From: Macrostomum lignano
Lineage: Eukaryota
Direction of reading: 5' to 3'
Length of the DNA stretch: 64,000 bases
Assembly: GCA_002269645.1 (NCBI GenBank)
Contig: NIVC01000530.1
Span: 310,001-374,000 of the forward strand
A program made the position numbers and the translations under genes. The notes beneath the pieces are model-generated. The model was not told the origin of the DNA. It searched no databases and saw nothing but the letters and a program-made list of their open reading frames with translations. Numbering within the stretch: the first letter of the stretch is position 1; every line of letters starts with the position of its first letter. Positions 1 through 50,117 of the stretch are shown one piece after another.

Positions 1-3000
1 CCAGCTGGGAGGCCTTCAACAGCAGCAGCCGCTGGAGGCAGGTCAAACCTTGCGAAGCGGTAATGCAGGTGCAGCAAATGTTTGATTTTATTGCCGCCTC
101 AAGCCAATCACGTTTCACTCCAGGTTCTGACAACGTTCATCTGGCTACTCAGCGAGAGTTCGCTTGCTTGGCAGGCCATAACCATCTCAGGAAAGTTCGC
201 TTATTTCAATTTTTTATTTCATTCACACTGCTATCTATTGGCAATAAATATTTTCAGGCTGCGATGCCATGATGCGCATCAGCATGAAACTGTCCAGTAA
301 CCTGCTCTTCCATCGGCTCGGCCTCTTCGTCAGCGAAGAAGTTCAACAGTCGAGTTCTCCGTTCAACTTCTTTGTAGACAGCTGCAGCTTCGGCAAGGCG
401 GCCTGCTGGCTGTCCGATTCTTCTGGCAGAGATGTCAACGCAACGCTGGTGAGCCGCCATCAAGGACCTTGGTTTTAAAGCATGTATTCGATTGTGCATT
501 CAGTAGGCTGAGGAAGTTCTCAACTGGCTTCAGGTTGGCTCGTCTCGAGCTGATGAAAGTGGGATTCCGACTCACAAGCTCGAGTTTGGAACTCTTCCTG
601 ATGATCACGGAAAGCTGCTGCAGTGCGGCTTGAGCACTTCTCATGGCGCTGTTCTGCTTGAGAAGCTTCTGTTGTGGGAAGGTGCTCTTCTTTTGCTTTT
701 CTAAACTTACCAGCAGTTAGAATTGCGGATCGTAGCTCGTATTGCTACTGAAGTTTAGGGACAGACTCAGATGTACCCTTGACAGCCTAGTTATTTTAAC
801 TCTATGTTAGATATAATTATTTTTAGTTCCAGTCAAAGCTCTGCACGTCTCAGCTTTGCCAGTCCTGGTTGCTGGGCAGCTGGCAAAGCTCAGCGTGTTC
901 TCAGACTCCCTGCCTGAGGCTCAGCACCGCTGCTTCATCCAGAGGCCGGGGTCGCAGCGAAGAAGAAACCTCACTGTTCTCAGCACTGTAACTTCCTATC
1001 GAATTCGAATGCATTGCGTACGCATTTCCAGGAAATGAACTTTGATTATTGATTTTCAATTTCAGAGCCAGTCAAAAAAAATCGACAACAAGAACAGAAC
1101 ACTCGTCAGAGTGCGCTCAGAGTTCGGCTTTAATGTATCGATGGCTGATAGAAATGCCGACATCGTGTGCAAAGGAACTGCTGGATCAGAAAGGAAGGAA
1201 ACTGCTTGGAATGGAATAATTTCAGAAATCAGTGGTATGCACATCATAACTCTTGGAGAAAATATGATAATGGCGCAAAGAAGAATAAAAAAATTAACAG
1301 GATTTTTTTGTTTATTCGCTGACATTCTTGAGAACCTGGCATACTCCGTGTGGTCCTCATTGGCTCCTAAAGTCCTCTTGACCACCCTGACAAGTCTGAA
1401 AAAAAGTATGTATCATCAGTCTATGCTTCATCTTTCAGAGCCCTGCGAGACAGTCGTGGACTTGGGACCGGAGAAATTCTGGTTGGCGGGGCAGACCAAG
1501 CTGGTTCAGGTGATCTCTAAGCGCTGCAGCATCTGGAATGTGAGCCACAGCTGCTGGCTGAAACTGAATGGCGACTCCCCACCGCTTCAGAAAGTGCAAG
1601 TGAGTGAAAATCACTATTGTTAAATTCTTAATCAACAAACTTCATTCGGGTCTAGAATATGTCAGCTCTGTCTTCATCTGTGCACCAAATTCGAATACAG
1701 CAGGGTGAGTTCAACAGCACCCACGAGCTTCGAGAAGTCGAGGCGATGGCCCGTCAGAATTGGCAGGTTTTGTGCAGCGTCAATCAGTCTGGAGTTGAGT
1801 ATAATGACTCAGAAAGCAGTCTGAGCAGTGCACCAGCTGTCTTTAGTGAGTCATTTTAGCCGCTTTGAGTCTGAGTATGGAATTTGATGTTACTACTATA
1901 CGTGCAGTTTTCCGGGCGTTTTGGAGGTGGGGTGGGTGTCAACCCTCCTCGCCTCTCATTGGCTGGCGACCCGATCACTAGGTGATCGATACGCGTATCG
2001 ATATCGGCGCTCGGCGCGCGCGCGCCGCAGGCGCGTGGCGCCAAGCGCCGCAGGCGCACCCTCCCGATATGTACCCCGATATGTATGCCCTCCCTCCCGA
2101 TATGTATGCCCTCCCGAGTCGCAGGCGCCCATGCAGCAGGCGCCCCCCCCCCTCCCCGCCGCACGCGCCCTCCCCCGACATGTATGCCGCAGGCGCCCTC
2201 CCCGCCTCAGGCGCCCCTCCCGATATGTATGCGCACTCTCCCTATATGTACACCGATATGTATGCAGCAGGCGCCCCGAGTGTACACTCTCCCGATATGT
2301 GTGTACACCGATATGTAGTCATCGATACGGGCCTCTTCCCCTCTCTCACCTACATCTCAACTAGCGAAATCGAACCCAGGTCGCGCCCATACTAGGACAC
2401 TACACGGTTGTGGGGTATAGGGAGCGAGAAGTTTCAACCCTAACGCTGACGCAGCCCTGTACAGTGAGAGTGTACGGGCAGAGAGGGGTGGGGCGGACAG
2501 AGAACCAGCCACTAGGTTGTTATACTGTTGAAGCATAGGGAGCGAGAAGTTTTAACCCCGATGCTGACGCAGCCCTGTACACTGAGCGTGTACGGGCAGA
2601 GGGTGGGTGGAAAGAGATGTGAATAACACAGCCTGCTGCAGGAGCCGGATAGAGAGGCGCATGCTAGGACAGAGAGGTAGTGTGAGTCACACACACCCCA
2701 CAGAGAAAGCCATACAGAGGATAGAGAGCTCCCTCCCCAGTTGCAGGGGACAGAGAGGCAGGCAGGGTATGCAGGGGCATGCGAACCGTCAAGGGGCCAC
2801 GCGAGGATAGAGTGGAGGAGCAGAGATGTGTTTGGACAGAGAGCCAGCCACGTGTGCGTAGTGTGAGGGAACAGAAACATATGGAGCAGGAGGGAGATAG
2901 GAAGCAAACGCGCAGGGTAAGGGAGCCACACAGGGCGGTACAGTGAGACACGGGCAGGGGTGGAGCCGTGCGTGGACAGAGCTGAACGGCACGGTCAGCT

Positions 3001-6000
3001 GCAGGAATAGGATGATAGAGAGGCGCGGAGGGGGACAGAGAGCAGTGTGCAGGGGTAGGCAGCCACGCAGGCTGGGGAACAGAGAGGCGCGTGTCAGCCA
3101 GTTGCAGCCCGGGACAGAGAAGTATGAAGGGGGGCCTGGGACAGAGTTCCGAGCAAGGCACAGAGGTAGGGTCCTGTAGCTATGTATAGGCAGGGAGCCA
3201 CGCGAGGGCAGGACAGGGGAGCAGACATGCAAGTTGCATGCAAGGCCAGAGAGGTGTGCGCGGAGGGAGACAGAGAGCAGTGTGTAGGGGTAGGTAACAG
3301 CAAACTTTAGTAGCGGCGCGTGCGGGGACGGAGAAACCAGTCAGAGCATACAGAGACGTTACAGAGAGGTACACAAGCAGAGACCAAAGCGAGCAGAGCA
3401 CATGTGTAGGGACAGAGACGTGAGGGAGAATCGACCAAAACACGCTATGTATTTTCAAAAGTTGGTTTTAGTGCAACATGTTTAATAGCGGGTAGTATAA
3501 TAGTATGTACATAGTAGGTATAATAGTAGTAATAATAGTAAGCATATTAGCCCAAAAGGTAGACTAAAACAGGCTAAACTGTGTGTACGCATCCTCATCA
3601 CCCCACAAGCCCCCTCTCCCGCCAGACTCACTCTACCAAACCCTCCTGTATTGCTGCATGAAGGAAAATATAGTGTAAAAATACAGATCTTAACCGTCAG
3701 ACCGCTGAAATCAGGGCACACTAGAGGGGGTTTCGGGGTCTGCATGCTCTATGTAAGCTGCTTGAGGAGGTTCCAAGGGCGTTGTGAGGGTTTCCATTAT
3801 GTTTTGAAAAAAAACTAGGGCTTAAATACAACGTTTTATTCAAAAGTAGGTTATTTTAATGAAATAGCTGACACAATCATTGTCGAGAGTAGAAATTTTT
3901 ATAAGAAACCAGGCATTTTAGCAAAAATAAACCTTCAAACCACATAAAATTGAATAAAAAGCAGACATTTTCAATTATAAACCGCAAGTATTTTAATAGA
4001 AAAGTAAGCAAACAAGGCACAAAACCAGCAAATTTTACCTTTTTATTTTAATGTTACTGATAAGGTAGAGAGTAGAAACTTGTGAGCTGTACGGAGTTAG
4101 AAAGTATTAACCATTATGTATCGTATGAATTATTAGTTCAGTACCAGCCATTGGTCAAGCGAGCATTTATGAAGTTATTACGAGTGATGAAGGGATAGAG
4201 AGCTATATACAGGAAGACAGTATCCTTCTAAACCACCACGAACAGATTGCTAATAGAGATAAGCTTTGTCTGTGTGCAGTATGAGTAAGCGAAGGCGGGG
4301 CAAATACTTTTCCACATGCCGGACAGAACAGTATTGTGCTAGGATTTCTCTCGAAATCGCGGTACGTTACTAGTTTTTATCACACCATCCAGATGCGTCA
4401 ACTAGTCAGCAGTAGTCATTTATATGTTATTAGAACTTACAAACCCAGGTCAAGTAAATATTACAAAGAGTATATTACGTACACACGCAACTCCGAATAC
4501 CAAGCCATACTAGTCTACTTGCAGTGCTCCTGGAGGGAAGGGACGGCGGGGTGTACATCCGGCAGGGTGGGCGTCCAGCGAGTGTACATCTGACAGGATG
4601 GGTGTTCAGCAAGTGTACATCTGACAGGGTGGGCGTTCAGCAAGTGTACCTTCAGCGTCGAGTAGGTGTACACCCGTCAGTGGGAACTCAGCCCCTCCCA
4701 CCAATGTCGTGTGCATGCGGTTAGTCAGTATAGTGGTGGGGTAGACGGTGCAGGAAGGAAACCCAGATGCTGACGCTGCCCTGTACAGCGAGCAACCAGC
4801 CCTCCTGTAGCAGGAGGGGGACAGAGAGTGCGTGGAGGCAGTAGGAGATAGAGGACGCTACCCGGCATGTCGCAGCACGCGGCGCGGGACAGAGAGGCAG
4901 TGTGTAAGTCACCCCCAGGGAGAGCTGCCCTGGCAGGAGGCGCGGGACAGAGAGGCGGTGAATCACACCCCACGGAGAGAGCCGTACAGCGAGCTTCCCC
5001 ACCCGAGTCCGGTAAATATTACAGAGTATTACGTGCACACGCCAGCCCTGAATACCAAGCCATACTAGTCTACCTGCAGTGCTCCCAGAGGGAAGGGATG
5101 GTCAGGAGTTACACACCAAGAATGCATTCATACAAAGAGTACACAACTCGAGCCCAGACACCAAGTCACAGTCTACTTACAGTAGAGATGGTAGATTAAT
5201 AGCAAGATTATATTACAATTAGACCTCCCTAGCACATGAGGAGTGAAATTCAATAATAATTGAATTCAATAATAATACAACATTTAGACGTAGTAATTTA
5301 ATTACAAAATACCACTAACACTGAGCCAACGAATTGTAGGTTACAAAGGAGTTGCCACTCATATGGAAAGCCAGTATAATGCAGGTGTATATTATTAAAA
5401 CATAGACAAAAACGATGCAGACGTATATACACACTATTGATTTTGTACATGTACATTTCGGCATATTACCACACATCGCAGGCACATATTATATATCGGG
5501 GGATAGGTTAAAATACACACATCGTAGATGTAGAAGCAGACACAATGCAGGAAAATTATGATACGAGTGTACATATTAGTGCGTAAAAGTATCATATTAT
5601 GACACCCTGTAGCACATATTGACATAATGCAGGGGAAAATATTGACAGAAATAGTACACAATTGTAGAGGTAACAACCCGCCAACTAGTAAGGACATCCA
5701 GCACTTGTTCAGGTTTTTATTATTTCGAGACGAGTGTCATGCCCCCGCAAGAGATCTTATCAGAAATTTGTTGAACTCCACTGCAACTCTCCCCAGAGCC
5801 TCCAAATGTGAGTTTTTAACCCAGGGTCGAGTACAAAGGACCCGCCCACTCTTAACCCCAAGGGGTGATCGTAGCGGAGACCAAGTACAGTGCGGACGGA
5901 GAGGGGTAACAGAAAGCGCTGCATCAGACCGCAGGGCTGCATTCCTCCCCCGAGGTAGGCGCGTCAGCTCCCACTCCTCATTTAACCATCAAGTAAACTA

Positions 6001-9000
6001 AAGAAGTCAAGCAGAAAGCCTTACAATCACCCGCAACCAGCACAAGTAAGAGTACTTTCCACTAGAGAGCCATAGTGCAAGATTCGCGAGCCAAGTTGAA
6101 GAAGCACACCAAATTACACTAAAGACATATGTATTAAAAAGCATACCGGCACCTCTACAAAAACACAGTATGTACCGATTAAAGTTGCTTTTGGTGCAGT
6201 GTATTTAATAAAAAGCAGGTACCTAACACAAAAGTAGGCATCAATGCAGTGCACGGGCTAAACTGTATTTACAAACGCAGGGCAACGAACTACACACAAT
6301 GTAGCGCATAGACATAATTGTACGCATAAATGTACGCAATTTCCGGTATATAGGACCAAATGTACACAATGTACACAAACACACACACACACACACACTC
6401 AGGCGTATTCACAGCAAGAGCTTCCTGACGATGGCGCCATAAATGTACGCAATTTCCGGTATATAGGACCAAATGTACACAATGTACACAAACACACACA
6501 CACACACACACTCAGGCGCATCCTGCAGCGCATCCTGCAGCACCGATCGCCGCAGGCGATGGCGCCATCGTCAGGAAGCTCTTGCTGTGAATACGCCTGA
6601 GTGTGTGTGTGTGTGTGTGTTTGTGTACATTGTGTACATTTGGTCCTATATACCGGAAATTGCGTACATTTATGCGTACAATTATGTCTATGCGCTACAT
6701 TGTGTGTAGTTCGTTGCCCTGCGTTTGTAAATACAGTTTAGCCCGTGCACTGCATTGATGCCTACTTTTGTGTTAGGTACCTGCTTTTTATTAAATACAC
6801 TGCACCAAAAGCAACTTTAATCGGTACATACTGTGTTTTTGTAGAGGTGCCGGTATGCTTTTTAATACATATGTCTTTAGTGTAATTTGGTGTGCTTCTT
6901 CAACTTGGCTCGCGAATCTTGCACTATGGCTCTCTAGTGGAAAGTACTCTTACTTGTGCTGGTTGCGGGTGATTGTAAGGCTTTCTGCTTGACTTCTTTA
7001 GTTTACTTGATGGTTAAATGAGGAGTGGGAGCTGACGCGCCTACCTCGGGGAGGAATGCAGCCCTGCGGTCTGATGCAGCGCTTTCTGTTACCCCTCTCC
7101 GTCCGCACTGTACTTGGTCTCCGCTACGATCACCCCTTGGGGTTAAGAGTGGGCGGGTCCTTTGTACTCGACCCTGGGTTAAAAACTCACATTTGGAGGC
7201 TCTGGGGAGAGTTGCAGTGGAGTTCAACAAATTTCTGATAAGATCTCTTGCGGGGGCATGACACTCGTCTCGAAATAATAAAAACCTGAACAAGTGCTGG
7301 ATGTCCTTACTAGTTGGCGGGTTGTTACCTCTACAATTGTGTACTATTTCTGTCAATATTTTCCCCTGCATTATGTCAATATGTGCTACAGGGTGTCATA
7401 ATATGATACTTTTACGCACTAATATGTACACTCGTATCATAATTTTCCTGCATTGTGTCTGCTTCTACATCTACGATGTGTGTATTTTAACCTATCCCCC
7501 GATATATAATATGTGCCTGCGATGTGTGGTAATATGCCGAAATGTACATGTACAAAATCAATAGTGTGTATATACGTCTGCATCGTTTTTGTCTATGTTT
7601 TAATAATATACACCTGCATTATACTGGCTTTCCATATGAGTGGCAACTCCTTTGTAACCTACAATTCGTTGGCTCAGTGTTAGTGGTATTTTGTAATTAA
7701 ATTACTACGTCTAAATGTTGTATTATTATTGAATTCAATTATTATTGAATTTCACTCCTCATGTGCTAGGGAGGTCTAATTGTAATATAATCTTGCTATT
7801 AATCTACCATCTCTACTGTAAGTAGACTGTGACTTGGTGTCTGGGCTCGAGTTGTGTACTCTTTGTATGAATGCATTCTTGGTGTGTAACTCCTGACCAT
7901 CCCTTCCCTCTGGGAGCACTGCAGGTAGACTAGTATGGCTTGGTATTCAGGGCTGGCGTGTGCACGTAATACTCTGTAATATTTACCGGACTCGGGTGGG
8001 GAAGCTCGCTGTACGGCTCTCTCCGTGGGGTGTGATTCACCGCCTCTCTGTCCCGCGCCTCCTGCCAGGGCAGCTCTCCCTGTGGGGGTGACTTACACAC
8101 TGCCTCTCTGTCCCGCGCCGCGTGCTGCGACATGCCGGGTAGCGTCCTCTATCTCCTACTGCCTCCACGCACTCTCTGTCCCCCTCCTGCTACAGGAGGG
8201 CTGGTTGCTCGCTGTACAGGGCAGCGTCAGCATCTGGGTTTCCTTCCTGCACCGTCTACCCCACCACTATACTGACTAACCGCATGCACACGACATTGGT
8301 GGGAGGGGCTGAGTTCCCACTGACGGGTGTACACCTACTCGACGCTGAAGGTACACTTGCTGAACGCCCACCCTGTCAGATGTACACTTGCTGAACACCC
8401 ATCCTGTCAGATGTACACTCGCTGGACGCCCACCCTGCCGGATGTACACCCCGCCGTCCCTTCCCTCCAGGAGCACTGCAAGTAGACTAGTATGGCTTGG
8501 TATTCGGAGTTAGCGTGTGTACGTAATATACTCTTTGTAATATTTACTTGACCTGGGTTTGTAAGTTCTAATAACATATAAATGACTACTGCTGACTAGT
8601 TGACGCATCTGGATGGTGTGATAAAAACTAGTAACGTACCGCGATTTCGAGAGAAATCCTAGCACAATACTGTTCTGTCCGGCATGTGGAAAAGTATTTG
8701 CCCCGCCTTCGCTTACTCATACTGCACACAGACAAAGCTTATCTCTATTAGCAATCTGTTCGTGGTGGTTTAGAAGGATACTGTCTTCCTGTATATAGCT
8801 CTCTATCCCTTCATCACTCGTAATAATTTCATAAATGCTCGCTTGACCAATGGCTGGTACTGAACTAATAATTCATACGATACATAATGGTTAATACTTT
8901 CTAACTCCGTACAGCTCACAAGTTTCTACTCTCTACCTTATCAGTAACATTAAAATAAAAAGGTAAAATTTGCTGGTTTTGTGCCTTGTTTGCTTACTTT

Positions 9001-11862
9001 TCTATTAAAATACTTGCGGTTTATAATTGAAAATGTCTGCTTTTTATTCAATTTTATGTGGTTTGAAGGTTTATTTTTGCTAAAATGCCTGGTTTCTTAT
9101 AAAAATTTCTACTCTCGACAATGATTGTGTCAGCTATTTCATTAAAATAACCTACTTTTGAATAAAACGTTGTATTTAAGCCCCTAGTTTTTTTTCAAAA
9201 CATAATGGAAACCCTCACAACGCCCTTGGAACCTCCTCAAGCAGCTTACATAGAGCATGCAGACCCCGAAACCCCCTCTAGTGTGCCCTGATTTCAGCGG
9301 TCTGACGGTTAAGATCTGTATTTTTACACTATATTTTCCTTCATGCAGCAATACAGGAGGGTTTGGTAGAGTGAGTCTGGCGGGAGAGGGGGCTTGTGGG
9401 GTGATGAGGATGCGTACACACAGTTTAGCCTGTTTTAGTCTACCTTTTGGGCTAATATGCTTACTATTATTACTACTATTATACCTACTATGTACATACT
9501 ATTATACTACCCGCTATTAAACATGTTGCACTAAAACCAACTTTTGAAAATACATAGCGTGTTTTGGTCGATTCTCCCTCACGTCTCTGTCCCTACACAT
9601 GTGCTCTGCTCGCTTTGGTCTCTGCTTGTGTACCTCTCTGTAACGTCTCTGTATGCTCTGACTGGTTTCTCCGTCCCCGCACGCGCCGCTACTAAAGTTT
9701 GCTGTTACCTACCCCTACACACTGCTCTCTGTCTCCCTCCGCGCACACCTCTCTGGCCTTGCATGCAACTTGCATGTCTGCTCCCCTGTCCTGCCCTCGC
9801 GTGGCTCCCTGCCTATACATAGCTACAGGACCCTACCTCTGTGCCTTGCTCGGAACTCTGTCCCAGGCCCCCCTTCATACTTCTCTGTCCCGGGCTGCAA
9901 CTGGCTGACACGCGCCTCTCTGTTCCCCAGCCTGCGTGGCTGCCTACCCCTGCACACTGCTCTCTGTCCCCCTCCGCGCCTCTCTATCATCCTATTCCTG
10001 CAGCTGACCGTGCCGTTCAGCTCTGTCCACGCACGGCTCCACCCCTGCCCGTGTCTCACTGTACCGCCCTGTGTGGCTCCCTTACCCTGCGCGTTTGCTT
10101 CCTATCTCCCTCCTGCTCCATATGTTTCTGTTCCCTCACACTACGCACACGTGGCTGGCTCTCTGTCCAAACACATCTCTGCTCCTCCACTCTATCCTCG
10201 CGTGGCCCCTTGACGGTTCGCATGCCCCTGCATACCCTGCCTGCCTCTCTGTCCCCTGCAACTGGGGAGGGAGCTCTCTATCCTCTGTATGGCTTTCTCT
10301 GTGGGGTGTGTGTGACTCACACTACCTCTCTGTCCTAGCATGCGCCTCTCTATCCGGCTCCTGCAGCAGGCTGTGTTATTCACATCTCTTTCCACCCACC
10401 CTCTGCCCGTACACGCTCAGTGTACAGGGCTGCGTCAGCATCGGGGTTAAAACTTCTCGCTCCCTATGCTTCAACAGTATAACAACCTAGTGGCTGGTTC
10501 TCTGTCCGCCCCACCCCTCTCTGCCCGTACACTCTCACTGTACAGGGCTGCGTCAGCGTTAGGGTTGAAACTTCTCGCTCCCTATACCCCACAACCGTGT
10601 AGTGTCCTAGTATGGGCGCGACCTGGGTTCGATTTCGCTAGTTGAGATGTAGGTGAGAGAGGGGAAGAGGCCCGTATCGATGACTACATATCGGTGTACA
10701 CACATATCGGGAGAGTGTACACTCGGGGCGCCTGCTGCATACATATCGGTGTACATATAGGGAGAGTGCGCATACATATCGGGAGGGGCGCCTGAGGCGG
10801 GGAGGGCGCCTGCGGCATACATGTCGGGGAGGGCGCGTGCGGCGGGGAGGGGGGGCGCCTGCTGCATGGGCGCCTGCGACTCGGGAGGGCATACATATCG
10901 GGAGGGAGGGCATACATATCGGGGTACATATCGGGAGGGTGCGCCTGCGGCGCTTGGCGCCACGCGCCTGCGGCGCGCGCGCGCCGAGCGCCGATATCGA
11001 TACGCGTATCGATCACCTAGTGATCGGGTCGCCAGCCAATGAGAGGCGAGGAGGGTTGACACCCACCCCACCTCCAAAACGCCCGGAAAACTGCACGTAT
11101 AGTAGTGATGTTGCTACTCAATTAAATTGAAAGAAAATCAAAAGCCGAATCTTTCTTGCCATTGAAAAAACGTCAAGGCGAAGCCAGCAAGTCAACGCTT
11201 GAACTCACGTTATCCTACGTCGGTAACAGCCAGTCTGAAGTGAGCGTGCTTGTAGTTGATCAAAATAAAAACCAAAACCCACTACTTCCGGTCTACAGCA
11301 TCAACTGCTCAGTTGCGGGAGATGAGGCATCGACAGAGCTGAGCAATATCAGAAAGACTGAGTGGCGTGGCTTACTGAAACTGAGATGGAACCGCTCATC
11401 TGTGAACGTCTGCTGCTCCAGTTACCAAACCTACACTGCATTGACTGTCTTTAAGTATCTGCAGTGCGAATCTTTAAACCAACAGCCCGTCGGTAAAGAT
11501 GGTGAGCATTATTTATTGCATTCTTCACCCAAATTTGTAGGAAAGTGGGATCGAATTGCAGTCTTCACTTTAATTTTCTAGAAATCTAAATTCACTTTAA
11601 AAGTCATTGAACTTGAACTTAAACCAGTTTGAAATTTTGAGGGTGGGTTGCAGATGTTCGAGTTTCCGCTCTGCTAGCAGCGGGCCTCACGCTAGCATTT
11701 CTGGTTGCTATCTGCCTCAGCATCTGGGCTTTCGCGGCAACAGCTACAGTCGTGTCATGTGACCGGAAGAACGAGGAATCGTTCGAAACCGTATCAGATT
11801 GTGTCCCAGCGAGCGCTGCTGACGGAGGAACAAGTGAAGCAAGCGATGGCTCTAGTCTACAG
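1..11862 (+). CDS. Multi-exon gene (5' end outside window) for a type I membrane protein with several Ig-like (CD80/nephrin-type C2-set-like) domains; 3' end after the TM exon unresolved
   Basis: Open exons with splice signals, e.g. 258-448, ~504-681 (LEFGTLPDDHGKLLQC), ~829-1017, ~1066-1239 (SEFGFNVSMADRNADIVC), ~1439-1598, ~1682-1845, ~11178-11491 and 11654-11862 (hydrophobic VSALLAAGLTLAFLVAICLSIWAFAA). The D-x-G/N-x-x-hydrophobic-x-C strand-F pattern is typical of C2-set Ig domains. The segment 714-780 could not be fitted in frame. Confidence 0.7.
1971..2330. repeat. Subterminal GC-rich repeat block (CCCGAYATGTATG and GCAGGCGC motifs plus short palindromes); mirrored at ~10670-11030
   Basis: About 8-10 copies of CCGAYATGTRY interleaved with (C/G)CAGGCGC. 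Hairpin CGATCAC-TAG-GTGATCG and palindrome ATCGATACGCGTATCGAT near 1972-2002. Confidence 0.85.
2450..3430. repeat. Purine-rich degenerate repeat region (GGGACAGAGAG motif) in the palindrome arm; mirrored at ~9570-10550
   Basis: Many (G)GACAGAG copies. Near-duplicated ~130-bp block at 2416-2500 and 2536-2610. Confidence 0.7.
6325..6674. repeat. Palindrome centre: 81-bp direct duplication, (CA)n tracts and nested mini-hairpins
   Basis: 6325-6405 is repeated at 6438-6518, and both are complementary to 6594-6674. GCGCATCCTGCA occurs twice. ATCGCC-GCA-GGCGAT hairpin. Perfect palindrome CGATGGCGCCATCG at 6557-6570. Confidence 0.9.
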
Positions 11863-15170: not shown

Positions 15171-18100
15171 ATGTCTGATAAGTTGAACAATGGAAATTTC
15201 AAACTTTCTTTTGCGCTTCTGCATGTGAAAGTCTTCATCTTGTTGTTATTGGTTTCAAAGTAAGTGTGACGGGGGACTTGTGGAAAACTTCATTGTTTTA
15301 CTATCATTTTTACTATCAGTAGACTACTACGTAAGTGTATCATATTTTGTATGAATTCTGTGTACGAGTACATTCATTGAATCGGCTTTTATATGTCAGC
15401 AAGTGATGAATTTTTAACAAATCAATAATTTGCCCAGCGCCCATCGTAACTCTCAGCCTTACAATTCGCTGTATCATCTATCGTTTTATATTAACTGTTC
15501 GTTTTTCGTCGCTACTATAAAAACAAATAAAAAACTTGGCCAACTAAGCAAGCAAAATATATCAATTCAATTGTATATTGGACTGCGCTATGCTTTCATT
15601 TTTCTTCGGTCTTGTTCGGTCTTGTTCTGCCAAGGACTGCCAGATTAAATTCGTCACATTTAATGGAGGGTCCCACCTCGAGATTCGAACCCTGGGTCGA
15701 GACGTGCTACTGCTACACAACTTTCCGATCGGAGGAGGAAGGAGATTGAGGCTGAGCGCAGCGACAATACCCAATTCAGCGCGTTCCTCCCAGTCGTCAT
15801 TCCCCTATGGATCATTTGTGCATCTCGACAATCTAAGTAATGCCATAAATTCAGTCCGCCATCGTATCGCTCGACTCGTATTCTGCATCACCGCAGCAAG
15901 TGGCGGTGGCCTCAAAAGGGCCGTTTTACATTACGTTACACCTCACCTGCCTGCGAAACTCACCATAATCATCTCTATTCGGCGGCGATCATTCAACATT
16001 CAACACTTTCTACATGTTCGTACGTCGTTTCGTCGGTACCCACACGACGTGGCCAGCTCCGACCAACTGCGACCTAAAAGGGCCGTTTCAGTCCATTCAA
16101 CTGTACCGGCTACCCCATTCAGACCTTACCGTCCCGTCAACTGAAAATCTGCAACAGCTGCTCTACACCAAGGTTGATATTTTGCTTGTAAAAATGTAAA
16201 TGCTTCAAATAATTATTGCTTGCACTGTGAAACTAATGTTTTTAATCCAATATCAAAATACATGTACGCATGTATTGTTATAATTCAGTGAGTTTCATCA
16301 TTTTCGCCTTTCATATACATGTCCCTGTCATCTTGTGCTATTAAAATGTTTTTTCTGTTCCATCTTTTGCTTCCGTCTCCTGTCGATCTAGTTTCCTTTT
16401 CCCCAGCAACGGGCCCGTGAGCCGTACCATTTTTTGCTGCGCGGTTCTCGTCAGCCGGGCGCCCTTGGCGTCGTTCAGAGTTCGTTGCGACCTTCTTTGT
16501 GCCTGTCTTTCTCTGCACCTCTGCGTACGTTGGCTGGGAGGCATCTGCGACCCACTGGGGTCGCGCCCGTGCGGTCCATCGGGACCGGCCCAGCGGTGAG
16601 CCGTCTGTTGGCTGGCGCATTCGGCGCGTTGTCTGCTGCATTCTGCAGCGTGATGCTATTCGTACACTAATCTCTACTTTTCTTCTCGCGTGCTGTCGCG
16701 CTCTCTTGTGTGCTTACTAAAAATGTTCCTCAGCTCATTTCGTAATCATTGTCTGCATTTTCACTTATGTTATTCAAATTAATATTGACTACATGTATTC
16801 GAGTGCAAATATCTTTTCTTTTAGAGGAAGGCGAGTGTGACGGGGGACTTGTGGAAAACTTCATTGTTTTACTATCATTTTTACTATCAGTAGACTACTA
16901 CGTAAGTGTATCATATTTTGTATGAATTCTGTGTACGAGTACATTCATTGAATCGGCTTTTATATGTCGGCAAGTGATGAATTTTTAACAAATCAATAAT
17001 TTGCCCAGCGCCCATCGTAACTCTCAGCCTTACAATTCGCTGTATCATCTATCGTTTTATATTAACTGTTCGTTTTTCGTCGCTACTATAAAAACAAATA
17101 AAAAACTTGGCCAACTAAGCAAGCAAAATATATCAATTCAATTGTATATTGGACTGCGCTATGCTTTCATTTTTCTTCGGTCTTGTTCGGTCTTGTTCTG
17201 CCAAGGACTGCCAGATTAATTCGTCACATAAGAACCGAACAAAATACTTTTTTTTTAAATATTGCATCCGATTGGACGTCAAACCTTATTGTGCCGAATT
17301 TCAGACACCATGCCGCAAATCACTATTGTGTGAGCGGACTGACGCTGAGTCTGCGACTCGATGATTTCTACCAAAGAGACGAGCTCATCATTCCGCAACT
17401 GACAGATGAGTCTGAGCGAAGTTTGATAAAGCACAGGACCTGTAAGTGGGCCGTCAAAGCGGACTCCCGAAGGAGGGATCTTCAACTCGTGCTGGAAGGG
17501 CGACCAGCTGGTTCTGGGAAAAACCCTGTCAGTTTAAACATTCGCTACTCGCCGGGTTCAAGAGGATGGGCGGCTGTGTCGCCTGGAATGTTTAGAGTAT
17601 TTCCGTTGGCAAAGGGGCAAGTTTTATTTTGCTGACGTCATACAGTGTTTGCATGTAGCAGGTCATACCTATATAGATAAACGGCATAGCACATGCTAAA
17701 TATAGAGCTTTGCTTTAATTTTGCTTAAAACGCGCGTAACAAAAAGTGAGCTACTAAACACGTCATACAAACAAAAAATGTCTTGCTTGGTGCCTTAGGA
17801 TGATATCGATTCTAATGAAAATTTTCTTTCCAGCAATCAGTTCAATGAGGAGACAAACTGGGATACGAGATACCAGAATAGAAGCACGTCAAACCTGAGG
17901 ATTGTCCTGCCACTTCCCGGGTTCTGCAGCCGGGAAATGCTCAGCTTCAATAGAAAATGCTACGCCGTGAGCTCAGCAAAGCAGAATACTTCAGCCGCAA
18001 TGTCCAGCATTGAAGGCGATGCTCAGCTGGCCAGCTTCTCCAGCATGGCTGAGATCAGCGAGCTCATCGCTGCCAGTGAGTGAGCATCGTCTTAGATTGA

Positions 18101-18826
18101 ACTGTAGGCTATGATTTCGAAATTCAATGACACTTTTTTCATCATTTCAGACGGCGAAAAGCTGCAGGAGTTTCCCTACAGGCGGCCCCTGAGCCTGGGC
18201 CAGCCGGTCCGTCTCGGCATGTTTCTGAACGCATCCGCTGCCACAGTGCTGTCCTTTGTCAGGAGTGACAGCGGTTGCCTGCTGCTACAGCCTGTGACAG
18301 ATTTCAAGGACTTCTTGTAAACTTTTACTGCATTTACTTTGCTCTTGAAATGAAAGAATAACGGAGAGAATATGAATAATTGTTCTTCAGACTATCGGAC
18401 AAAGTGGCGGGACCATGCGTGTCGCTGAGAGTGACTGAGTCAGATACAGCGGTGGTCGAGTTCGTTAACTGCAGCAGCCCGATGCTGTCGCTGCTGAGCT
18501 TCCCGGAGACTGCGCGCTCCTTTCCGAGCTCAGCGAAGTGCAGGGATATAAAGCTTGAGAATCTTATTCGTCTGAACAGCTGTCGTCAAGAAACAGCCTC
18601 AGCTACTTCCACGGTAACTGTCGATGCTCCAATCCAACCTTATTTTTTCGACGAATCCCAAGCCTCAGATTTTAGTTTTCAAATCCTGATTTTGGCCTTG
18701 TGTTTGACTTTCCTGCTGATTTCGGGCATCGCATACTTTGTTGTCGCAAAGTCGGACTCTAGCAATACTCGCGAAGTTCTCAAAGTATTTGTTCGCCGAG
18801 ATCTTAAAGGCATTGAAAATTTATAA
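15171..18826 (+). CDS. Cluster gene A: SP - CUB-like - C-type-lectin-like - TM receptor, 414 aa, intact
   Basis: Exons 15171-15259, 17305-17616, 17834-18075, 18151-18316 and 18391-18826 join in frame (1245 nt). Motifs NHYC, CKWAV, CSREMLSFNRKCY, GDAQLASFSS, PVRLGM, GPCVSL, NCSSPMLSL. TM ILILALCLTFLLISGIAYFVV. Intron 2 needs a GC donor. Confidence 0.75.
15265..17228 (+). mobile_element. Non-autonomous LTR retroelement (TRIM-like) in intron 1 of gene A
   Basis: LTRs 15265-15658 and 16836-17228 (TGTGACG...CGTCACA, about 2 differences). 4-bp TSD TAAG at 15261-15264 and 17229-17232. tRNA-Gln-like PBS TGGAGGGTCCCACCTCGAGATTCGAAC at 15664-15690. PPT AGAGGAAGGCGAG at 16823-16835. No recognisable gag/pol inside. 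Confidence 0.9.
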
Positions 18827-20365
18827 TCTATACGAAGAAGAAACTTGCTGCATTTTTACTAACGGCGTAGCTGTGATGGCTAAATAAATTCAGTAGGTGA
18901 GCCTAGTCGTCCGAGTACTGTAGACTAGAGAATCAAACTTCTACCCGAGATCCCTAGCTCGTCAGCCGCAAAACTAATCTTGTCTAGGTATAGTAGCTCT
19001 ATGCAGCGTCTCTAAAAATATTAAATGTTTTTTTTGCTTCTGAACCTTTATCAATTCACGTGATGATGTATTTTTTAACGATAGCAAGTACGTAAGTAAT
19101 TAATCAAATTGCAAAATTTAAATACAATAAAAAAACGTACATTACATGTTTTTATAATCTAATTTTTAGTATATAGGATGCTTATCCTCACTTGAATTTT
19201 TTGAGGAAACTGTTACCATGAGAGTGCAATGACCCATAGTGTGACATCTGTCTACAACATCAGATATGATTCTCAGCTTTCAAACATGGCCGAGATCAGA
19301 AAGCTGTCAGTATGATAATTAATCCTAAATAGAATATTATTGTTTTTAGACAAGAAAGTTCGTAGACTTTGTAGATCCGTCTTACATGAACCACAAGCCA
19401 CTCTGTCCGTGACCTCAAATGAAGACAGCAGAAGTCAATACTTCAACGGGTTTCATAGAGCAAAGATTTCTAGTTAATGGCCCTTACAATATTCCCCTAG
19501 TTTTGTTGAGTGACAACCAAAAATTGATCATCAGCCGCAGTTGAATTCGATATACCGGTATTAAAATTAAGAAACAAATAAAATGTGCGGCTAGAAACTA
19601 CAGTGTTTTAGCAGAAAAAGTTAAGTATATATAATTGAAAGCCCCTCTGAAGTGCTCCTGCCAACTCTCTAAACTGGTGAAATAAGCGACGATGAGTTAG
19701 GAGAAATAAAAAATAACTGCAGCACAGTCAAGTACATCGAATTATATACTCTCTGGATTGTATTTTCGGTTATCTTCTGAAATTGTCTGTCCAGGTCGGT
19801 GATTACAATTAGTGCAACAGCGAGCGTGAGCGAGGGCGAGAAAGCAAACAATTAGACACTGAATCTTACGTGTCCAGTCCCATTCGTTGTAGAAAATAGC
19901 TAGAAACAACAGGTTAGTCATTGATGCTGTCTGCAGCAGCCACGCTGTTTTACGTCGCAATTAACATTTTCATCTCTCTGTCAGTTTTCTGCATACATTT
20001 TTGTCTCTGCAGTGCATGATAATCTGGATAGCTAGAGTGTTGCGGTCTAATGTACAGATAAAGCATAGAATTGAGTCTTATTTAACTGTGCAAGTACTCA
20101 TTCGTGGCTAACTATCTTAAGTTTAATTATTTTGTCGCACCTACAAACTAAAATTGTCTTCTCAACAGGGCAAGACTGAATCTGGAGCTAAATTTTAACC
20201 GGTGGGAATTCCAAAGACTGGCCAAGGGAATACCATACCAATTTAGATATATATAGAAGGCATAGAAGGCATGTATTACCTTCGAATTGTCTTATCTTTT
20301 CTTCTTTTCTAATTGCACTAGTTGGTTAAATCTCAGAGTTTTGAAAACCCTAACTAGAAAGCGAC

Positions 20366-22307
20366 ATGCCTGAAGAAGTTGGCAGATCACTGTGGTCAGC
20401 ATCAGTTCTACTTCTCTGCTTGTTCTCAGTCTGCAAGCTTAAACCGTAAGTTCAGAAAAGCTCTTTTTCCTTTAACTGTTGCTGAGAAGCTCGAACGAGT
20501 GTATATTTTTTTGAAAGAAAAGAACATAATTCTAGTTATTTATGGTAACATTTTTTATTTACGTCATACGTGATATACGATGTATGACAAATTTGATATA
20601 TGTCATACGTATAGTCTACGTTTGCGCTAGTAGTTTTGATTAAGTTTATTTGAATTGCTGTGACTTCTTAGAATCTGATGTGCATGTAATAATCTGGCGT
20701 ACGCGCTATAACAAAAAGTATTGCATACAATAGCGAACAAAAAAACAGATAAATGCCACAAATTAAGTATCGAATCTTTTTGCAAGTTTGAAAAAAACAA
20801 ACTGCTCGTCAAAAACCTGACAGGTGCCTATCAGAGAATCATTACTGCCCAATGGCCACCGAAGTTACGGTTCTGCTTGACGATTACAGCCACAGAAATG
20901 CGACATTCATTCCGAGAAGTCAAGATGGAATTAACGATGGTCCTATTGTAACGGGGCGCTGCAAGTGGACCGTTAAAATCAAAGCGCCAGAAAATCAGCA
21001 AGTTTTGGTGCAAAGACTTCCCGGAATTCCAGCTAAAAATTCTATCAAGCGAAATTCTAGCCTCCTACAGAATGTACTAATCTCCAACCAAAAAGGACTC
21101 AACGACGAGATACGTAGCGCTTCATTTTCTGTGCATTCAGCGCAAAAAAAGGTAAGCATGTACAAAAAACTCCTATCAAAAAATTTCCTAAATAATTTTT
21201 GCGCATCTTTCTTGTCATAATTTAGAAGCAAGTTTGAAATTTCAATCACCTGGGAGGCGGGCAGCTTAAAATCTTACGGCGACTTAGACAATGTTAGAGT
21301 CATGCTACCAATACCTGGATACTGCAGTCGCACCATGCTGGCCTTCAATGGGAAGTGCTATGCTATGAGTGCAGTTGAAAAAAATGTCACCGACGCCATG
21401 TCCAGCGTCAGGGGCGATGCTCAGCTGGCCAGCTTCTCCAGCATGACTGACATCTGCGAGTTCGTTGCAGCCAGTGAGAAAATGTTTGGTTCAAATGTCA
21501 GAGCCGGTGTTTTATTTTATTTATTGTACACATTGAAAATAAAAAAATAACTTTTTCAGACAAAGCAAGAGCAAATGAGTATCCATACAGACGGCCTCTC
21601 CATCTGAGCCAGCGGGTCCGTCTCGGCATGTTTCTCGATTCAGCCGATGCGACAGTGCTGTCCGTGGTCAGGAGTGACAGCGGCTGCCTGCTGAAGCCTG
21701 TAGCTAACTTGGATGAATTCAGGTGAGACTCAAGCTCAATTATTGATTTACTCGCATACCCGATTGTAATAAAATGTATCTTCGAAACTTTTTCAGAGTA
21801 ACTGGCGGAGTGACAGGTTCATGTCTGTCTCTCAGAGCGACCGGGTCAGACACGGTGATAGTCAAGCTCGGCGACTGCAGCAGCCCGATGCTGTCGCTAC
21901 TGAGCTTCCCGGAGACTGCGCGCTCCGTGCCGAGCTCAGCGCACTGCAATGGCAGCGAGCTGATTGACCGGATCGACCATCTGCTCAGTCCTGCTGCAAG
22001 TCTGTTCTCTAGTTCGATAACTTCTGCTGTCACGACTAGTCCAGATATTAAAGCTGCAGCTATACCATTGGAACCTATAATTGTTTCTGGGTGTGCGGGA
22101 CTTCTAATTTGTGCCGCAGCCGTTTTGATATACTTTTGCTTGAAGCGTCGTTCTGGTCGAAATGCTCAACATTATGGAAACGGAGAACAACCGGCCACCC
22201 AAACTATGCAGGAAAACCAGTTACCACTATTGGAATCACCTCTCGAGAGACGTGAATCAAATCAAGTTGCAGAGTCTACTACAGATCGTCAAGAAAGTTT
22301 AGTGTGA
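20366..22307 (+). CDS. Cluster gene B: CUB-like/CTLD-like TM receptor; apparent +1 frameshift in an A7 run at the end of exon 2
   Basis: Exons 20366-20445 (MPEEVGRSLWSASVLLLCLFSVCKLK), 20824-21151, 21226-21473, 21560-21722 and 21797-22307. Exon 2 is 328 nt where the phase requires 327. The tail ends ESLV. Confidence 0.7.
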
Positions 22308-22874
22308 CATCGAAATTCAGTCGAAATTTGGAAAAGATACTCTCGGTACCGGTATATCAATAGAGAGTAAACAACGAACATTGCTTTCCACTTTAACTGT
22401 TCAGTATATGAAAATTCGCATTTAGTCACATTGTGGAACAATTCTACTTCCGTGCAAACGACGAAAAATAAAAGGTACGTAAATAGAATGCACAGGCGAC
22501 AATATTTTTAGGCAGCTATTTTTAGCTATGACAAAGTTCTATACCTATATGCGAATGTGTCATAAATATATATATAGAAATTACTAAACGCAAGCACGTA
22601 CCATGTACCATGTACTTTTGTATTTTGTTCCTAAAAGAGGGTATCAAACCAATGATATAAATAAGTACCATGATGTTCTAACATCACCCTAGAAAAAATG
22701 CATCAGTGATACTCGGTATGCACTTGTACCGGCAGCATTTGCTTCTTGCTACTTTAACAATACTTTTACCATTGTAAGTACCACTCAAAGAAATAACCAA
22801 ATCAAGCTTATATATGCAAGCGAAACAAGCATACTTGTCCTCATCATGCTTTTTATATTGCATCATTATTTTAG

Positions 22875-24471
22875 AGTCGAGTCAGCCAACCACTACTGCG
22901 TGAACGGACAAACCCTAAGCATTGAACTGGACGATTTCTACCACCGAGACGAGACAATAATTCCTCAGGTTCTGGACTAGCCGAGGCACAAACTGATGAA
23001 GCCAAAGGATTGCAGATGGGAGATCCTACTGATGTCCTCGAATCCAGACCTGCAGTTTGTCCTCGAAGGATTGCACAGCAATGGTAGAAGCAGAGAGATC
23101 AGAGACAAATTCGACAGTAAAAATGCAAGCGCCAGTGTTGTTATGGACTCGAGAACGCGTATTGTTGCAGGCATGTTTCAGGTGCAGCCACTGAATAAGC
23201 GGTGAGTGGCGTAAGACACAAGAAAAATGTTTTGATGGAGAAAGAATTTAATGCAAGTTAACTAATTGATTTCAAACTCTTTCAATTTCAGCAAGCACTT
23301 CTCTCTCACAGCAAGTTGGGATCCTAGAACGCAAAAGCCGCAAGCAGAAAACTTAAGAATATTGTTACCACTGCCTAGATATTGTAGTCGGGACATGCTC
23401 AGCTTCAATGGGAGCTGCTATGCTGTGAGTACAGTTGAGCAAAATTTCACAGAGGTCATGTCCAGCATTGGAGGCGATGCTCAGCTGGCCAGCTTCTCCA
23501 GTCTTGCAGAGATCACTGAGTTCGTTGCTGCTAGTAAGTGCGACATGCATTAATACTGAAAGTTAATTTTAAAATGGTAAAAGCTAATCGGCACTGCTAT
23601 AATCAACCAGATTCCCTAAATCCTTGGCTAACTTGCAGATAACAAAAAGCTGCAGGAGTTCCCGTACAGACGGCCCCTGAGCCTGGGCCAGCCGGTCCGT
23701 CTCGGCATGCTTCTCAACCAATCCAGTGCGTCCGTGATGTCTGCGGTCCGGAGTGACAGTGGCTGTCGGCTGGAGTTGGTTTCAGGCAGCGGTGAATTCA
23801 GGTAAAGTTTGGCTCTGCCATTTTTAATAATAAATGCAAATTAATAACTTGAAGAAGTGATTAATAAAACTTTACTTTTTTACTTTTAAATGCATTTTAG
23901 TGCTTCTGGCGACAGAATAAAAGGTCCGTGCTTGTCTCTTAGGGTTACGAAGTCGAATAGAGTGGTGGTCGAGTTCAGCAACTGCAGCAGCCCGATGCTG
24001 TCGCTGCTGAGCTTCCCGGAAACTGCACGCTCCGTGCCGAGCTCAGCGCACTGCAGCAGCACCGGGATGGCAAATCTGATTGAGCGGCTGGTGAGCCGTT
24101 TATACAAAAATCCGTCAAGTCCAGCTGCTGATGAGGCTGCTACTCCGCCAAAAACAAAAGGACACTCGCCGTGGTGGGCTGTTCGCAGTTTTGCTTTTGT
24201 CGTGGTCGCTATCACCTTGTCGAGCTTAGCATTGGCAGTAGCTGTTTCGGTCTGGCGGAACTGCCGACAGCAGTCGCTGACGAAGTCAATTGACGCCGTG
24301 GAATCTGACAAGTACTCTGACGAGTCACTCATAAATAGTGAAGAAGCTGAGCAACAGACGGTCACTCTTGAAGCTGTAAACAACTCCGTGGACATGCGGA
24401 TCACAGATTGTTGTTTTGCTTTTGTCAGAATATGGCGAAAATTGTGTAATTTACATGTAAGTGACGTTTAA
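22875..24471 (+). pseudogene. Cluster gene C: paralog with premature stop in exon 2
   Basis: Exons 22875-23201, 23292-23533, 23639-23801 and 23901-24471 are phase-correct. In-frame TAG at 22978-22980 (GAG in the relic copy at ~49966). Signal exon not confidently found. Confidence 0.7.
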
Positions 24472-25973
24472 ATGGAAATAATTTTTAACTGACTTTGCAT
24501 AAATATTCAGCTATCCACTTATAACACAGTGGAAAAATCGATGCATATTCCCAGAATCGTACTTCAAAACTTACTATTTTTTAAGAAGCACGCTATCTGC
24601 CCACATGTACGGATGTACCTGATTTATATCTAGTCAATAAATTATTTAATCAATAGTTTCTATTTACAATATGCTCGTTCGTTTTCACAATTTTTAATTA
24701 CTTTATTATTTGTAAATAGTGTATATAAGTACAAAAAATATTACATCTGAAATGAAATTACCAGAAAAAACTGCCGAGAATTTTACCAGACTTTGGCATG
24801 CTTCAAAAGTACTTTTCTGTTGTCTGATCTCATTAGTGTACCTAACGCAATGCATAATGGCTTTTCGTGAATTCCAGAGTGATACAAATTATACTGAATG
24901 TACGAGCTACGAGCTACGTGCTTTATTTTCTTCATTTGAAGTGAGATTTAGATATATGGATTGACTATTAATTTCTCTTGACCTGTTGTCGAGTTTCATT
25001 TCATTATTTACTTTTAATCCTCTTAATACTAAAACTGGTGCGTTGTTTGTCTGTGTGTGTGTGTGTTTGTTGGATAACTCCTCCTAGAATACTTGCAAGT
25101 CAGCGTTGAAACTTATATGGGAAAACTGCAAATTTTCCGAGGATGGCTTTAGGCTATTTTAATCTTTCATTTTCAATTTTTAAGATCCCTAAAAAAGCAG
25201 AAAATGGCGGTCTTGACCTTTGATAATCTTAATTGTCCCCTCTTTCTGCTTGGAGCTGAAAATTTGCATCAATTTTAGTTATTGCGCCATAAAATTTTTC
25301 TATCTTGGCAGTGTATTTTCTCTCAAGTGGGGGGATGGTCGCGTTCTCAGTGGCTGCGTGTGTACACTTGAACCCTGGCTCACTGACTGACTTTATAGAC
25401 AATTGCGCAACTATTTGTGTTCTGTTTTTTAACAGGAAGCCCTGTGTATTTTTTGCACAGTGAAATTCAGTGCATTTTAATGCATAAACTTGCGAGCATC
25501 TTTAGCAGGCAGTGAACGTACACTCGATATTTCAATGCTTAAAATCAGAAAGTTTCAAACACTAACTGTTGCTCGAGTTTTGAACTTAGAGAGGAGAGAC
25601 TTATATTGCTGGAAAGATCTTGCTGCAATGAGTTCGGGGATATAAGTTTTTTTGCTTTAAATATGAAAATTAAATTCACAGCATTCAAGAAAAGATTTTC
25701 ATACTTTTAGCTTTCTGCAAAGATTGTGCTCATTTTGGAGTTCAATGGGGGTTCGACCGACCCCCCAATAGTTGGTGGGGGGGGGTTCAATTTCTAGCTG
25801 CACTGCGTATTGGAAGGGGGGTCGGTTGCTGTGTATTTGAGGGTTGATTTAGATTGCGCAATCTTTTTGTTAACTTTAACTGAGGCTGATACTGACTGCC
25901 TGAGAAATAAGTTGCGCAATTTAATTGGTTCAATGTTTTTACGGCGTCTTTCAACACGCAGCTGTGTGTAGCT

Positions 25974-42090: not shown

Positions 42091-43614
42091 ATGGAGTCGC
42101 ACTATCTTCTTCTTGCTGCCATCGCTCTGGTTTTTTCTAAGTAAGTTAAATTTTTTGATTAGATGATGAAATGTCTTTCATTAGATACACCATTAATTGC
42201 ATGCTTGTACTGTGCCCAGGTGTCACTGCATCACTGAGGATATTGAGCTGAACGACGGCAAGAGAGAGTTACTAATCAGTGTAGATTTGAGGAACCGCAG
42301 ACCACAGAGTTGGGAGGTGAGATTGAGCTCTAGAAGCTCCAATCAACAGGTACTGCTTGAAGGAACTGACCTCACTGACAGCGCCTATGCTGTCAGCTAT
42401 TCTCTGGGAACCGACTCAAGAATAGCGACTCGTGGACTATTTCACATCTTTACTCTCCATCAGCAGTAAGTTTTGAAAAAAAAACTTTTTTTAGCATAGC
42501 AGACAATGTTAAGACGCTGTACATGCAGTATTTGACGTCAACTATTCCAGAATGAAACTGCGCATAGAAGCAAAGCTGATACAAAGCGGCAAATGGCAAC
42601 GCAATGTCGCTTCGATCATCTTGAGACTTCGGCTGATAAGCCCTGGAAAGTGCGCCGCTGACATGCTCAGTTATCGAGGCTGGTGCTATGTTGACAGTTC
42701 AGTACCGCAGAATATTACAGAAGCGATGTTGAGCATTAGAGGCAATGCTCAGCTGGCCAGCTTTTCCAGCCTGAATGAGATGCAAGAGCTTATCCGTGCT
42801 AGTGAGTTTTTAAAATACACAATCATATATCTAAGGGCTACGAGCTACTAATACCCTGCTCATTTTCTTACAGACAATAAGCCATTATTAACTCCTCCAT
42901 ACAAGCGAAAAATCGACCTTAAGCAAGCAGCTCGTATCGGCATGTTCCGAGGCGATTCCAAGGCGTCAATAATGTCTCTAATCAATAGTGGCAGCCACTG
43001 CGAATTGCAGCCAGTTCAGCAGTACAAGGATCTCATGTAAGCATTCAATTGACGTGAAAACGTGAAGATTTTCGGCATTACCATTCTAAATTTTATTTGT
43101 TCTTTTTAGTGTAAACAATAAAACAAATGGTAAATGTTGGTCTATACGGGAGGTAACATCTGATGGCGCTGAGATGGAACTGAATGATTGCAACAGTCCA
43201 ATGCCATCACTGATAAGTTTCCAGCAGACAGCCAATTCTGAATTGCTGCATTTCTCCGACTGTCATAGCGACAGCATTATTCACCTAGTGACCGAACTGG
43301 TCGGTTCTTTTGCGAACAACAGATCAACGGTGCTCACAGGCGGCACAATTCCAACCAATTATGATGACAGAAATGGCAATGGAAGTGCTCAATGGGAAAG
43401 CGGCGCTATTGGTAACTCTACGGCGGAATATAGATCCGAGAAAAATACTCTAGGATTATGGGGAATTTTCATCATCGTAACTGCCTTTGTTTTTTTAGTT
43501 TTACTTATTTCTGTTTTCGTCTATCGCTTTCGCAAAAGATTGTGCACTCAAACACAGGATATTCCTGCTGAGAGTGAGCTGGAGGCAATGCATAATTCGA
43601 GGCAAAGTGAATGA
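42091..43614 (+). CDS. Cluster gene D: most divergent paralog, 404 aa
   Basis: Exons 42091-42140 (MESHYLLLAAIALVFSK), 42220-42465, 42551-42801, 42874-43036 and 43110-43614 join in frame (1215 nt). Motifs CAADMLSYRGWCY, GNAQLASFSS, ARIGM, DCNSPMPSL. TM LWGIFIIVTAFVFLVLLISVFVY. Confidence 0.8.
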
Positions 43615-47989: not shown

Positions 47990-48243
47990 CGGCTGATTGT
48001 GGGACCAGGAATCGAGTTTGGTCCTTTGTAGCCAAGTAATGGACGTCTAGATCTATAGATTGTATTTAGTATATTGGATGGGCTGTGATAATTATATGTA
48101 TTCATATCTCGTCTAATTTATTTTAAATGTAAAATATGGCCCAAAACCTCTAAAGATGGTGTCTGGACTGGAATTGTTCTCAGAGGGAAGTCGTCAAAGG
48201 GATTTTTTGCTAAAACTCTGATCATGGCTTCGTAACGTTTTGG

Positions 48244-50000: not shown

Positions 50001-50117
50001 CGCCGCCCTTGATACAGACAACACCGCCTACGCAATACAGCCTGATACAGGCCACTGACAGTGCCAGTAGCTCTTGGACTCAGGTCGCTGACCCTGTTCT
50101 TAAAACTGCATCTGACC

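Follow-up and report, generated by a model that had tools for sequence, protein, structure and literature searches.

A 9.2-kb near-perfect palindrome in a putative intron of Macrostomum lignano: a non-coding, foldback-type mobile element with a possible Maverick connection

The locus

The sequence analyzed here is a stretch of 64,000 nucleotides from the flatworm Macrostomum lignano (assembly GCA_002269645.1, contig NIVC01000530.1, positions 310,001 to 374,000 of the forward strand). This whole stretch is called the window, and all coordinates below are positions within it. Near its left end, at 1892-11106, lies a near-perfect palindrome of 9215 bp, of which the two arms make up 98.7%. It is a real and unusual foldback-type mobile element, non-coding and non-autonomous, in which one sequence is joined to its own reverse complement. 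The element, its flanking duplication and the host sequences on either side are laid out as follows.

1659..1845, + strand: putative upstream host exon, ending before GTGAGT at 1846; from the open reading frame (ORF) and a reading of the sequence
1886..1891, no strand: left target-site duplication (TSD), GATGTT, an exact direct repeat of 11107-11112
1892..1898, + strand: end motif (ACT)2A, with its mirror T(AGT)2 at 11100-11106
1892..6440, + strand: left arm, 4549 nt, begins ACTACTATACG; from inverted-repeat search and alignment
6559..11106, - strand: right arm, 4548 nt, terminates CGTATAGTAGT; carries the mirror subterminal array at about 10681-10944
11107..11112, no strand: right TSD, GATGTT, directly outside the right arm
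11145..11581, + strand: ORF with the putative downstream host exon; it starts behind the AG at 11143-11144, in a phase compatible with that of the upstream exon

The palindrome was delimited by an inverted-repeat search, in which six contiguous arm pairs tile the entire span. Aligned globally, 1892-6440 and the reverse complement of 6559-11106 show 99.78% identity for arms of 4549 and 4548 nt, with a single substitution (4174 G / 8827 A) and six indel events that cover nine bases. Four of the six events, and six of the nine bases, are changes in the length of C runs, the largest being a change of three bases in the C run near 2143; the indel bases outside C runs are an extra G, an extra T and an extra CA. 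The original prediction for this DNA had described arms of 4549 and 4548 bp, a 118-bp spacer, the ends and the flanking GATGTT, all of which are correct at their coordinates, and the substitution that it had placed by eye at about 4172 versus about 8827 is indeed the single one between the arms. Either the element is very young or the arms have been homogenized by exchange between them.

The ends of the element read 5'-ACTACTA...TAGTAGT-3'. The flanking direct repeat is exact only at a length of 6, as the 7-bp TGATGTT needs the element's own last T. An exact 6-bp duplication that abuts exact palindrome ends would arise by chance in about 1/4096 cases, and its presence indicates integration at a staggered cut. 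Any given end would show a doubled trinucleotide by chance in about 1/64 cases. Within the window, the 24-nt terminus is confined to the two ends of the element, for a chance expectation of 0.

The two flanks are different, unique host sequences, phase-compatible as two exons of one gene. Because of the consensus GTGAGT, the AG and the phase-compatible flanking ORFs, the insertion site between the two + strand ORFs reads as a short intron, which would be about 78 nt long without the element. An empty intron of about 111 nt had been proposed earlier, a length that was not borne out by this reading of the splice signals. The ORF of the downstream flank has no match in the protein collection, no paralogue of the host locus is found elsewhere within the 64-kb window, and neither an Rfam family nor a tRNA was found at or close to the site of insertion.

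The centre of the palindrome

The arms do not meet directly, and the region where they turn around contains the following features.

6325..6408, + strand: first copy of block U, 84 nt, containing a (CA)n run, inside the left arm
6431..6440, no strand: inner end of the left arm, self-complementary 10-mer ATGGCGCCAT
6441..6558, + strand: non-palindromic spacer, 118 nt, consisting of the second copy of block U and then about 37 nt
6559..6568, no strand: inner end of the right arm, self-complementary 10-mer ATGGCGCCAT

The 10-mer ATGGCGCCAT occurs only twice in the window, once at the inner end of each arm, and a random 10-mer is self-complementary in about 1/1024 cases. The second copy of block U (6438-6521) is a direct copy of 6325-6408 with 98.8% identity. 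The last 37 nt or so of the spacer contain a tandem repeat of 12 nt and, at 6549-6558 adjoining the right arm, GCCGCAGGCG, a decamer from the element's subterminal region. Because it is built from an 84-nt copy of the arm together with the element's own GCCGCAGGCG, the spacer is not foreign DNA. Read on one strand, the inner region consists of two tandem units, both with CGATGGCGCCAT at their end, and then the mirror arm.

The layout of the centre is consistent with a progenitor of which one end was copied by fold-back, and fold-back at short inverted repeats is a known route to large palindromes. The likeness to a copy-back genome that had been drawn in the original prediction extends to the centre, which is as expected for such a molecule, with ATGGCGCCAT at both inner ends and a self-derived loop of 118 nt. 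A match to mir-3149 at the centre (6482-6630, both strands) scores 54.7 bits where the gathering score is 100, and no credible microRNA is indicated; the sub-threshold match arises because (CA)n/(TG)n stretches on both sides of the palindrome centre form a hairpin.

Arm contents and coding capacity

Each arm combines a repeat-rich subterminal region with an interior of about 4 kb of mixed sequence. For the left arm, the features are given below.

1985..2027, no strand: two perfect local palindromes, of 18 nt (1985-2002) and 16 nt (2012-2027), which lie about 95-135 nt inside the terminus
2054..2317, + strand: subterminal array of nine same-orientation copies of CGATATGTA (at most one mismatch), interleaved with four copies of GCAGGCGCC
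2407..5101, + strand: non-coding body of the arm, containing direct repeats of its own and, at about 2620-3450, a purine-rich block

The local palindromes at 1985-2027 form hairpins in a single-strand fold. A third repeat, GCCGCAGGCG, is present in three copies at 2024-2195, two of them just outside the range of the subterminal array (2054-2317). All three repeats, CGATATGTA, GCAGGCGCC and GCCGCAGGCG, are far above shuffled expectation and, within the window, confined to the element; with the mirror array in the right arm, such arrays are present in both arms. The direct repeats of the body pair 2417-2491 with 2535-2610, 2407-2717 with 4733-4989, and 4443-4546 with 5001-5101, and a 31-nt tandem repeat occupies 4551-4649. 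It was also observed that GCCGCAGGCG is followed after 1-2 nt by TGGCGCCA at two places, the subterminal region (2024-2046) and the junction of the spacer and right arm (6549-6568). The pair may be a recurrent protein-binding site of the element.

A six-frame Pfam scan of the arm plus spacer at E<=1 returned no credible domain, only two meaningless hits of 11 bits. The longest ORFs of the arm lie in its part with 60% GC and look like chance. The scan upholds the earlier statement that no ORF is recognizable, and together with the arm alignment it supports the description of the element as non-coding and essentially all terminal inverted repeat (TIR). For an ORF that spans the junction of terminus and flank, protein libraries gave no match. 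For the arm ORF at 5627-6001, the sole match among 1.84 billion representatives is P0003, a 1450-aa, internally repetitive protein with 34% identity to the ORF over five repeated stretches, and this match was taken as spurious. Searches of the arm for RNA genes found no Rfam family and no tRNA.

No further copy of the element is present in the window, whether the search is made with the 24-nt terminus (at most three mismatches), with the 14-nt terminus or by BLAST of the whole arm against the rest, and nothing in the surrounding locus or elsewhere in the window resembles the arm sequence. The 22-nt terminus has 0 matches in viral, metagenome and prokaryote genome contig collections, and the 20-nt subterminal repeat has 0 matches in viral contigs. 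One metagenome contig matches the 20-nt subterminal repeat, with only 21 nt shared, and was dismissed as a chance match. An origin as foreign or vector DNA was rejected, given that the arm has no match to plasmids or phages.

Comparison with known systems

Vertebrate Mavericks have perfect 6-bp TSDs and ends of the form (AGT)2//(ACT)2, (AG)3//(CT)3 or (AC)3A//T(GT)3, and these end repeats have been interpreted as needed for jump-back in protein-primed replication (PMC8097293). With Mavericks, also called Polintons, the element shares a 6-bp TSD, seen in one insertion, and inverted repeats that end in a tandem short motif starting with 5'-A; the likeness is one of form, as the motif itself, ACT twice and then A, is none of the published types. 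The comparison with Maverick ends in the original prediction is sound, as 6-bp TSDs and reiterated end motifs are published for the group (PMC8097293). On the TSD and the form of the ends, machinery of the Maverick type would be the closest known match. The architecture is another matter: Maverick TIRs of about 50-1500 bp (46-1447 bp in one reported range and 100-1500 bp in another) surround a coding body of 13-25 kb, whereas arms of 4549 and 4548 bp surround a 118-bp centre here. Because it has no polymerase, integrase or other domain in the Pfam scan, the element could be at most a non-autonomous dependant of a Maverick. No report of palindromic elements in Macrostomum was found in the literature.

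Linear replicons give rise to copy-back or snap-back derivatives, such as the incomplete genomes of adenovirus and the hairpin or palindromic derivatives of the yeast killer linear plasmids. In copy-back defective genomes, one end is duplicated in inverted orientation, such that identical origins lie at both termini around a small asymmetric central turn-around. Both arms of the element likewise derive from the same end and are joined via a short asymmetric turn-around. A palindrome that carries one end twice would be the natural defective genome of a linear replicon with origins at its ends. Those genomes are extrachromosomal, whereas the element is integrated in a chromosome with a TSD. Large palindromes also form at short inverted repeats near breaks, as in Tetrahymena rDNA and in palindromic amplification in yeast and mammalian cells. 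There, too, a short inverted repeat, here the two copies of ATGGCGCCAT, flanks a non-palindromic spacer at the centre. Unlike the element, however, break-associated palindromes are rearrangements of a host locus without transposon-like ends or a TSD.

Long inverted repeats form most of the length of the foldback transposons, which include Drosophila FB, with its 9-bp TSD, and Galileo, Kepler and Newton of the P superfamily. The same is true of the element, which is mostly inverted repeat with a small centre. Further points of likeness in the foldback group are many non-coding copies, a TSD and short repeats within the terminal regions (PMC4168063). Galileo makes a 7-bp TSD, and its defective copies are attributed to abortive repair, slippage or template switching (PMC4168063). 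The repeats of FB and Galileo are either shorter or largely made of tandem subrepeats, whereas the element mirrors 4.5 kb of mostly complex sequence. Its exact TSD of 6 bp also differs from the 7 bp of Galileo and the 9 bp of FB.

Several other groups of transposons were considered and set aside. Elements of the EnSpm/CACTA type carry CACTA at both ends and make a 3-bp TSD. In the element, CACTA can be read at the right end only by borrowing a flank base, the flank base on the left is T, and the TSD is 6 bp. The suggestion in the original prediction that CACTAC at the right end recalls EnSpm therefore fails, as the motif is found at one end only and the TSD has the wrong length. Dada elements make a 6-7-bp TSD and insert into small-RNA genes, but no Rfam family or tRNA lies near this insertion, and the site reads as an intron. 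TSDs of 7-8 bp are made by hAT and P elements; hAT-, P- and MULE-type readings of the TSD were rejected, as were ends of the long terminal repeat type. IS3EU/GingerRoot elements share the 6-bp TSD, but their termini are TA..TA, or occasionally TG..CA (PMC10045372), and those of the element are AC..GT.

Origin of the element

The explanation favoured here is a fold-back origin followed by integration in trans by an integrase with a 6-bp stagger, most likely of the Maverick type, and it is put forward at a little under even confidence. A copy of the progenitor that retained one end would have been interrupted, by a break or a stall, directly beyond the second of a pair of ATGGCGCCAT sites that lie 118 nt apart. 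Because ATGGCGCCAT is self-complementary, the 3' end could fold back and anneal to the first site. Synthesis back out to the terminus would then yield a molecule whose two ends are identical and inverted, with a loop of 118 nt. A DDE-type integrase or transposase, acting in trans, would next have inserted this molecule with a 6-base stagger, and gap repair would leave GATGTT on both sides. The weakest step is the assignment of the enzyme set to the Maverick/Polinton type, which is suggested because a 6-bp duplication and an end of a twice-repeated trinucleotide starting with A are the published signature of the group. Derivation from a Maverick by snap-back is plausible though unproven, and somewhat less probable than not. 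The element would in that case be the integrated copy-back defective genome of a flatworm virus of the Maverick/Polinton kind, with previously unreported (ACT)2 ends, made during free, linear, protein-primed replication and inserted by the integrase of its parent; stated in this full form, the proposal is tentative and rather doubtful.

A number of observations weigh against such an origin. A single copy is known, so mobility as a family rests on one insertion and is unproven, and the TSD length of a family cannot be fixed from a single 6-bp duplication. The ends (ACT)2A//T(AGT)2 match none of the published Maverick motifs (PMC8097293). Arms of 4549 bp are three times the length of the longest reported Maverick TIR (46-1447 bp), no remnant of a pPolB, integrase, ATPase, protease or capsid gene was detected with Pfam (E<=1) in any of the six frames of arm and spacer, and no report of Mavericks in Macrostomum was found in the literature. 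Gene conversion between the arms, rather than youth, could explain their identity. In addition, short direct-repeat arrays in the same orientation near the ends typify the transposase-binding arrays of cut-and-paste elements, and nine same-orientation copies of the 9-mer CGATATGTA lie 170-430 nt from each end of the element. The interpretation in the original prediction, a snap-back derivative of a protein-primed and integrase-mobilized element, is supported in part: the non-coding, all-repeat structure, the 6-bp TSD, the copy-back centre and the comparison with Maverick ends stand, the EnSpm aside does not, and protein priming, an integrase partner and a mobile family are putative.

The subterminal arrays, whose short repeats share one orientation and which are present in both arms, speak for the main rival reading, in which the element is a foldback-type, non-autonomous derivative of a cut-and-paste DNA transposon from an unsampled or atypical superfamily with 6-bp (or 6-7-bp) TSDs. 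The palindrome would have arisen by template switching at ATGGCGCCAT during gap repair or replication, a DDE transposase would bind the CGATATGTA array, and ACTACT would be a coincidence, for which the chance of about 1/64 is not negligible. This origin would also agree with the absence of any Maverick gene remnant, and foldback-like transposons with long inverted repeats and TSDs are well known, Galileo being an example (PMC4168063). However, the only such group found in the literature with 6-bp TSDs, IS3EU/GingerRoot, has TA..TA termini. The TSD of Galileo is 7 bp and those of hAT and P are 7-8 bp, and a 6-bp TSD combined with a reiterated end that starts with A better matches the Maverick signature. 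On this evidence a cut-and-paste origin is unlikely, though it deserves serious consideration.

Two further explanations are less probable. It is improbable, if conceivable, that the symmetry is an assembly artefact inside a real insertion, in which the true centre was lost and the arms were joined via a long read that was chimeric or folded back. In vitro, too, polymerases fold back at short self-complementary sites, and most of the differences between the arms are in the lengths of homopolymer runs, as in residual long-read errors. The published M. lignano assembly was made from PacBio continuous long reads with Canu and polished with Pilon, and the genome is very hard to assemble (PMC5730564). 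If this is the published assembly, the differences in run length may well be uncorrected errors, and the true arms may be identical. Yet the spacer is derived from the element and is not adapter-like, and since a fold-back read cannot yield two different unique flanks with a perfect TSD, at least the two-ended insertion is real. Most improbable is that this is no transposable element at all, but a palindromic extrachromosomal fragment or a break-induced fold-back product that was captured at a break in the intron, with GATGTT generated by microhomology repair. Fold-back inverted duplications at breaks are documented, PMC11724301 being an example, and only a single copy is present within the window. 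Against capture at a break stand the arm sequence, which has no relative in the surrounding locus or in the remainder of the window, the palindrome ends, which fall exactly at the reiterated motif and are accompanied by ordered, transposon-like subterminal repeats in both arms, and the exact 6-bp duplication abutting those ends, with its chance of about 1/4096. The favoured explanation remains fold-back of a progenitor end followed by integration in trans.

Other features of the window

A satellite repeated in tandem every 1.2 kb or so occupies 25020-33200 and 37260-40600, in at least nine units, many of which are 97-100% identical. Strongly purine-rich blocks of low complexity, in which GC skew reaches up to 0.83, break it up at about 34.1-34.5, 35.9-37.2 and 41.0-41.7 kb.

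On either side of the satellite, at 17400-24500 and 42600-59800, a gene family specific to Macrostomum, with a transmembrane exon at the C terminus, forms a tandem array of at least eight paralogues. Two M. lignano proteins from UniRef (P0001 and P0002) match the array at 33-96% identity per exon when aligned to the window by tblastn, and their UniRef names, which refer to a vitellogenin domain and a PilZ domain, look uninformative.

A Ty3/gypsy-type gag-pol region with a zinc knuckle, aspartic protease, reverse transcriptase and RNase H extends from 60645 to 63603 and continues off the end of the window. Its coding region is split over four ORFs within the window, which implies at least three interruptions of the reading frame. 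Just upstream of this retroelement, at 59897-60432, is a degenerate inverted repeat of about 540 bp, similar to foldback elements or miniature inverted-repeat transposable elements, with arms that are 78-85% complementary. Its sequence is unrelated to that of the 9.2-kb element.

Implications

Long palindromes with short spacers are usually unstable, and even on the plainer reading a near-perfect palindrome of 9.2 kb within an intron is noteworthy. If the host gene is transcribed, the transcript would contain a perfect hairpin of 4.5 kb, a type of structure that yields small RNAs and could thereby silence related elements. Mu killer of maize provides a precedent for the silencing of related elements by a hairpin.

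Should the Maverick reading be true, the element would preserve a rare physical record of replication in these virus-like elements. It would provide structural evidence, preserved in a chromosome, for an extrachromosomal stage of Maverick replication that has so far only been inferred, and it would mean that Maverick-like elements spawn their own parasites, akin to defective interfering genomes. The known end motifs and host range of the Maverick group would be extended as well. In addition, the self-complementary 10-mer ATGGCGCCAT at the centre offers a concrete and checkable model for the birth of such elements.

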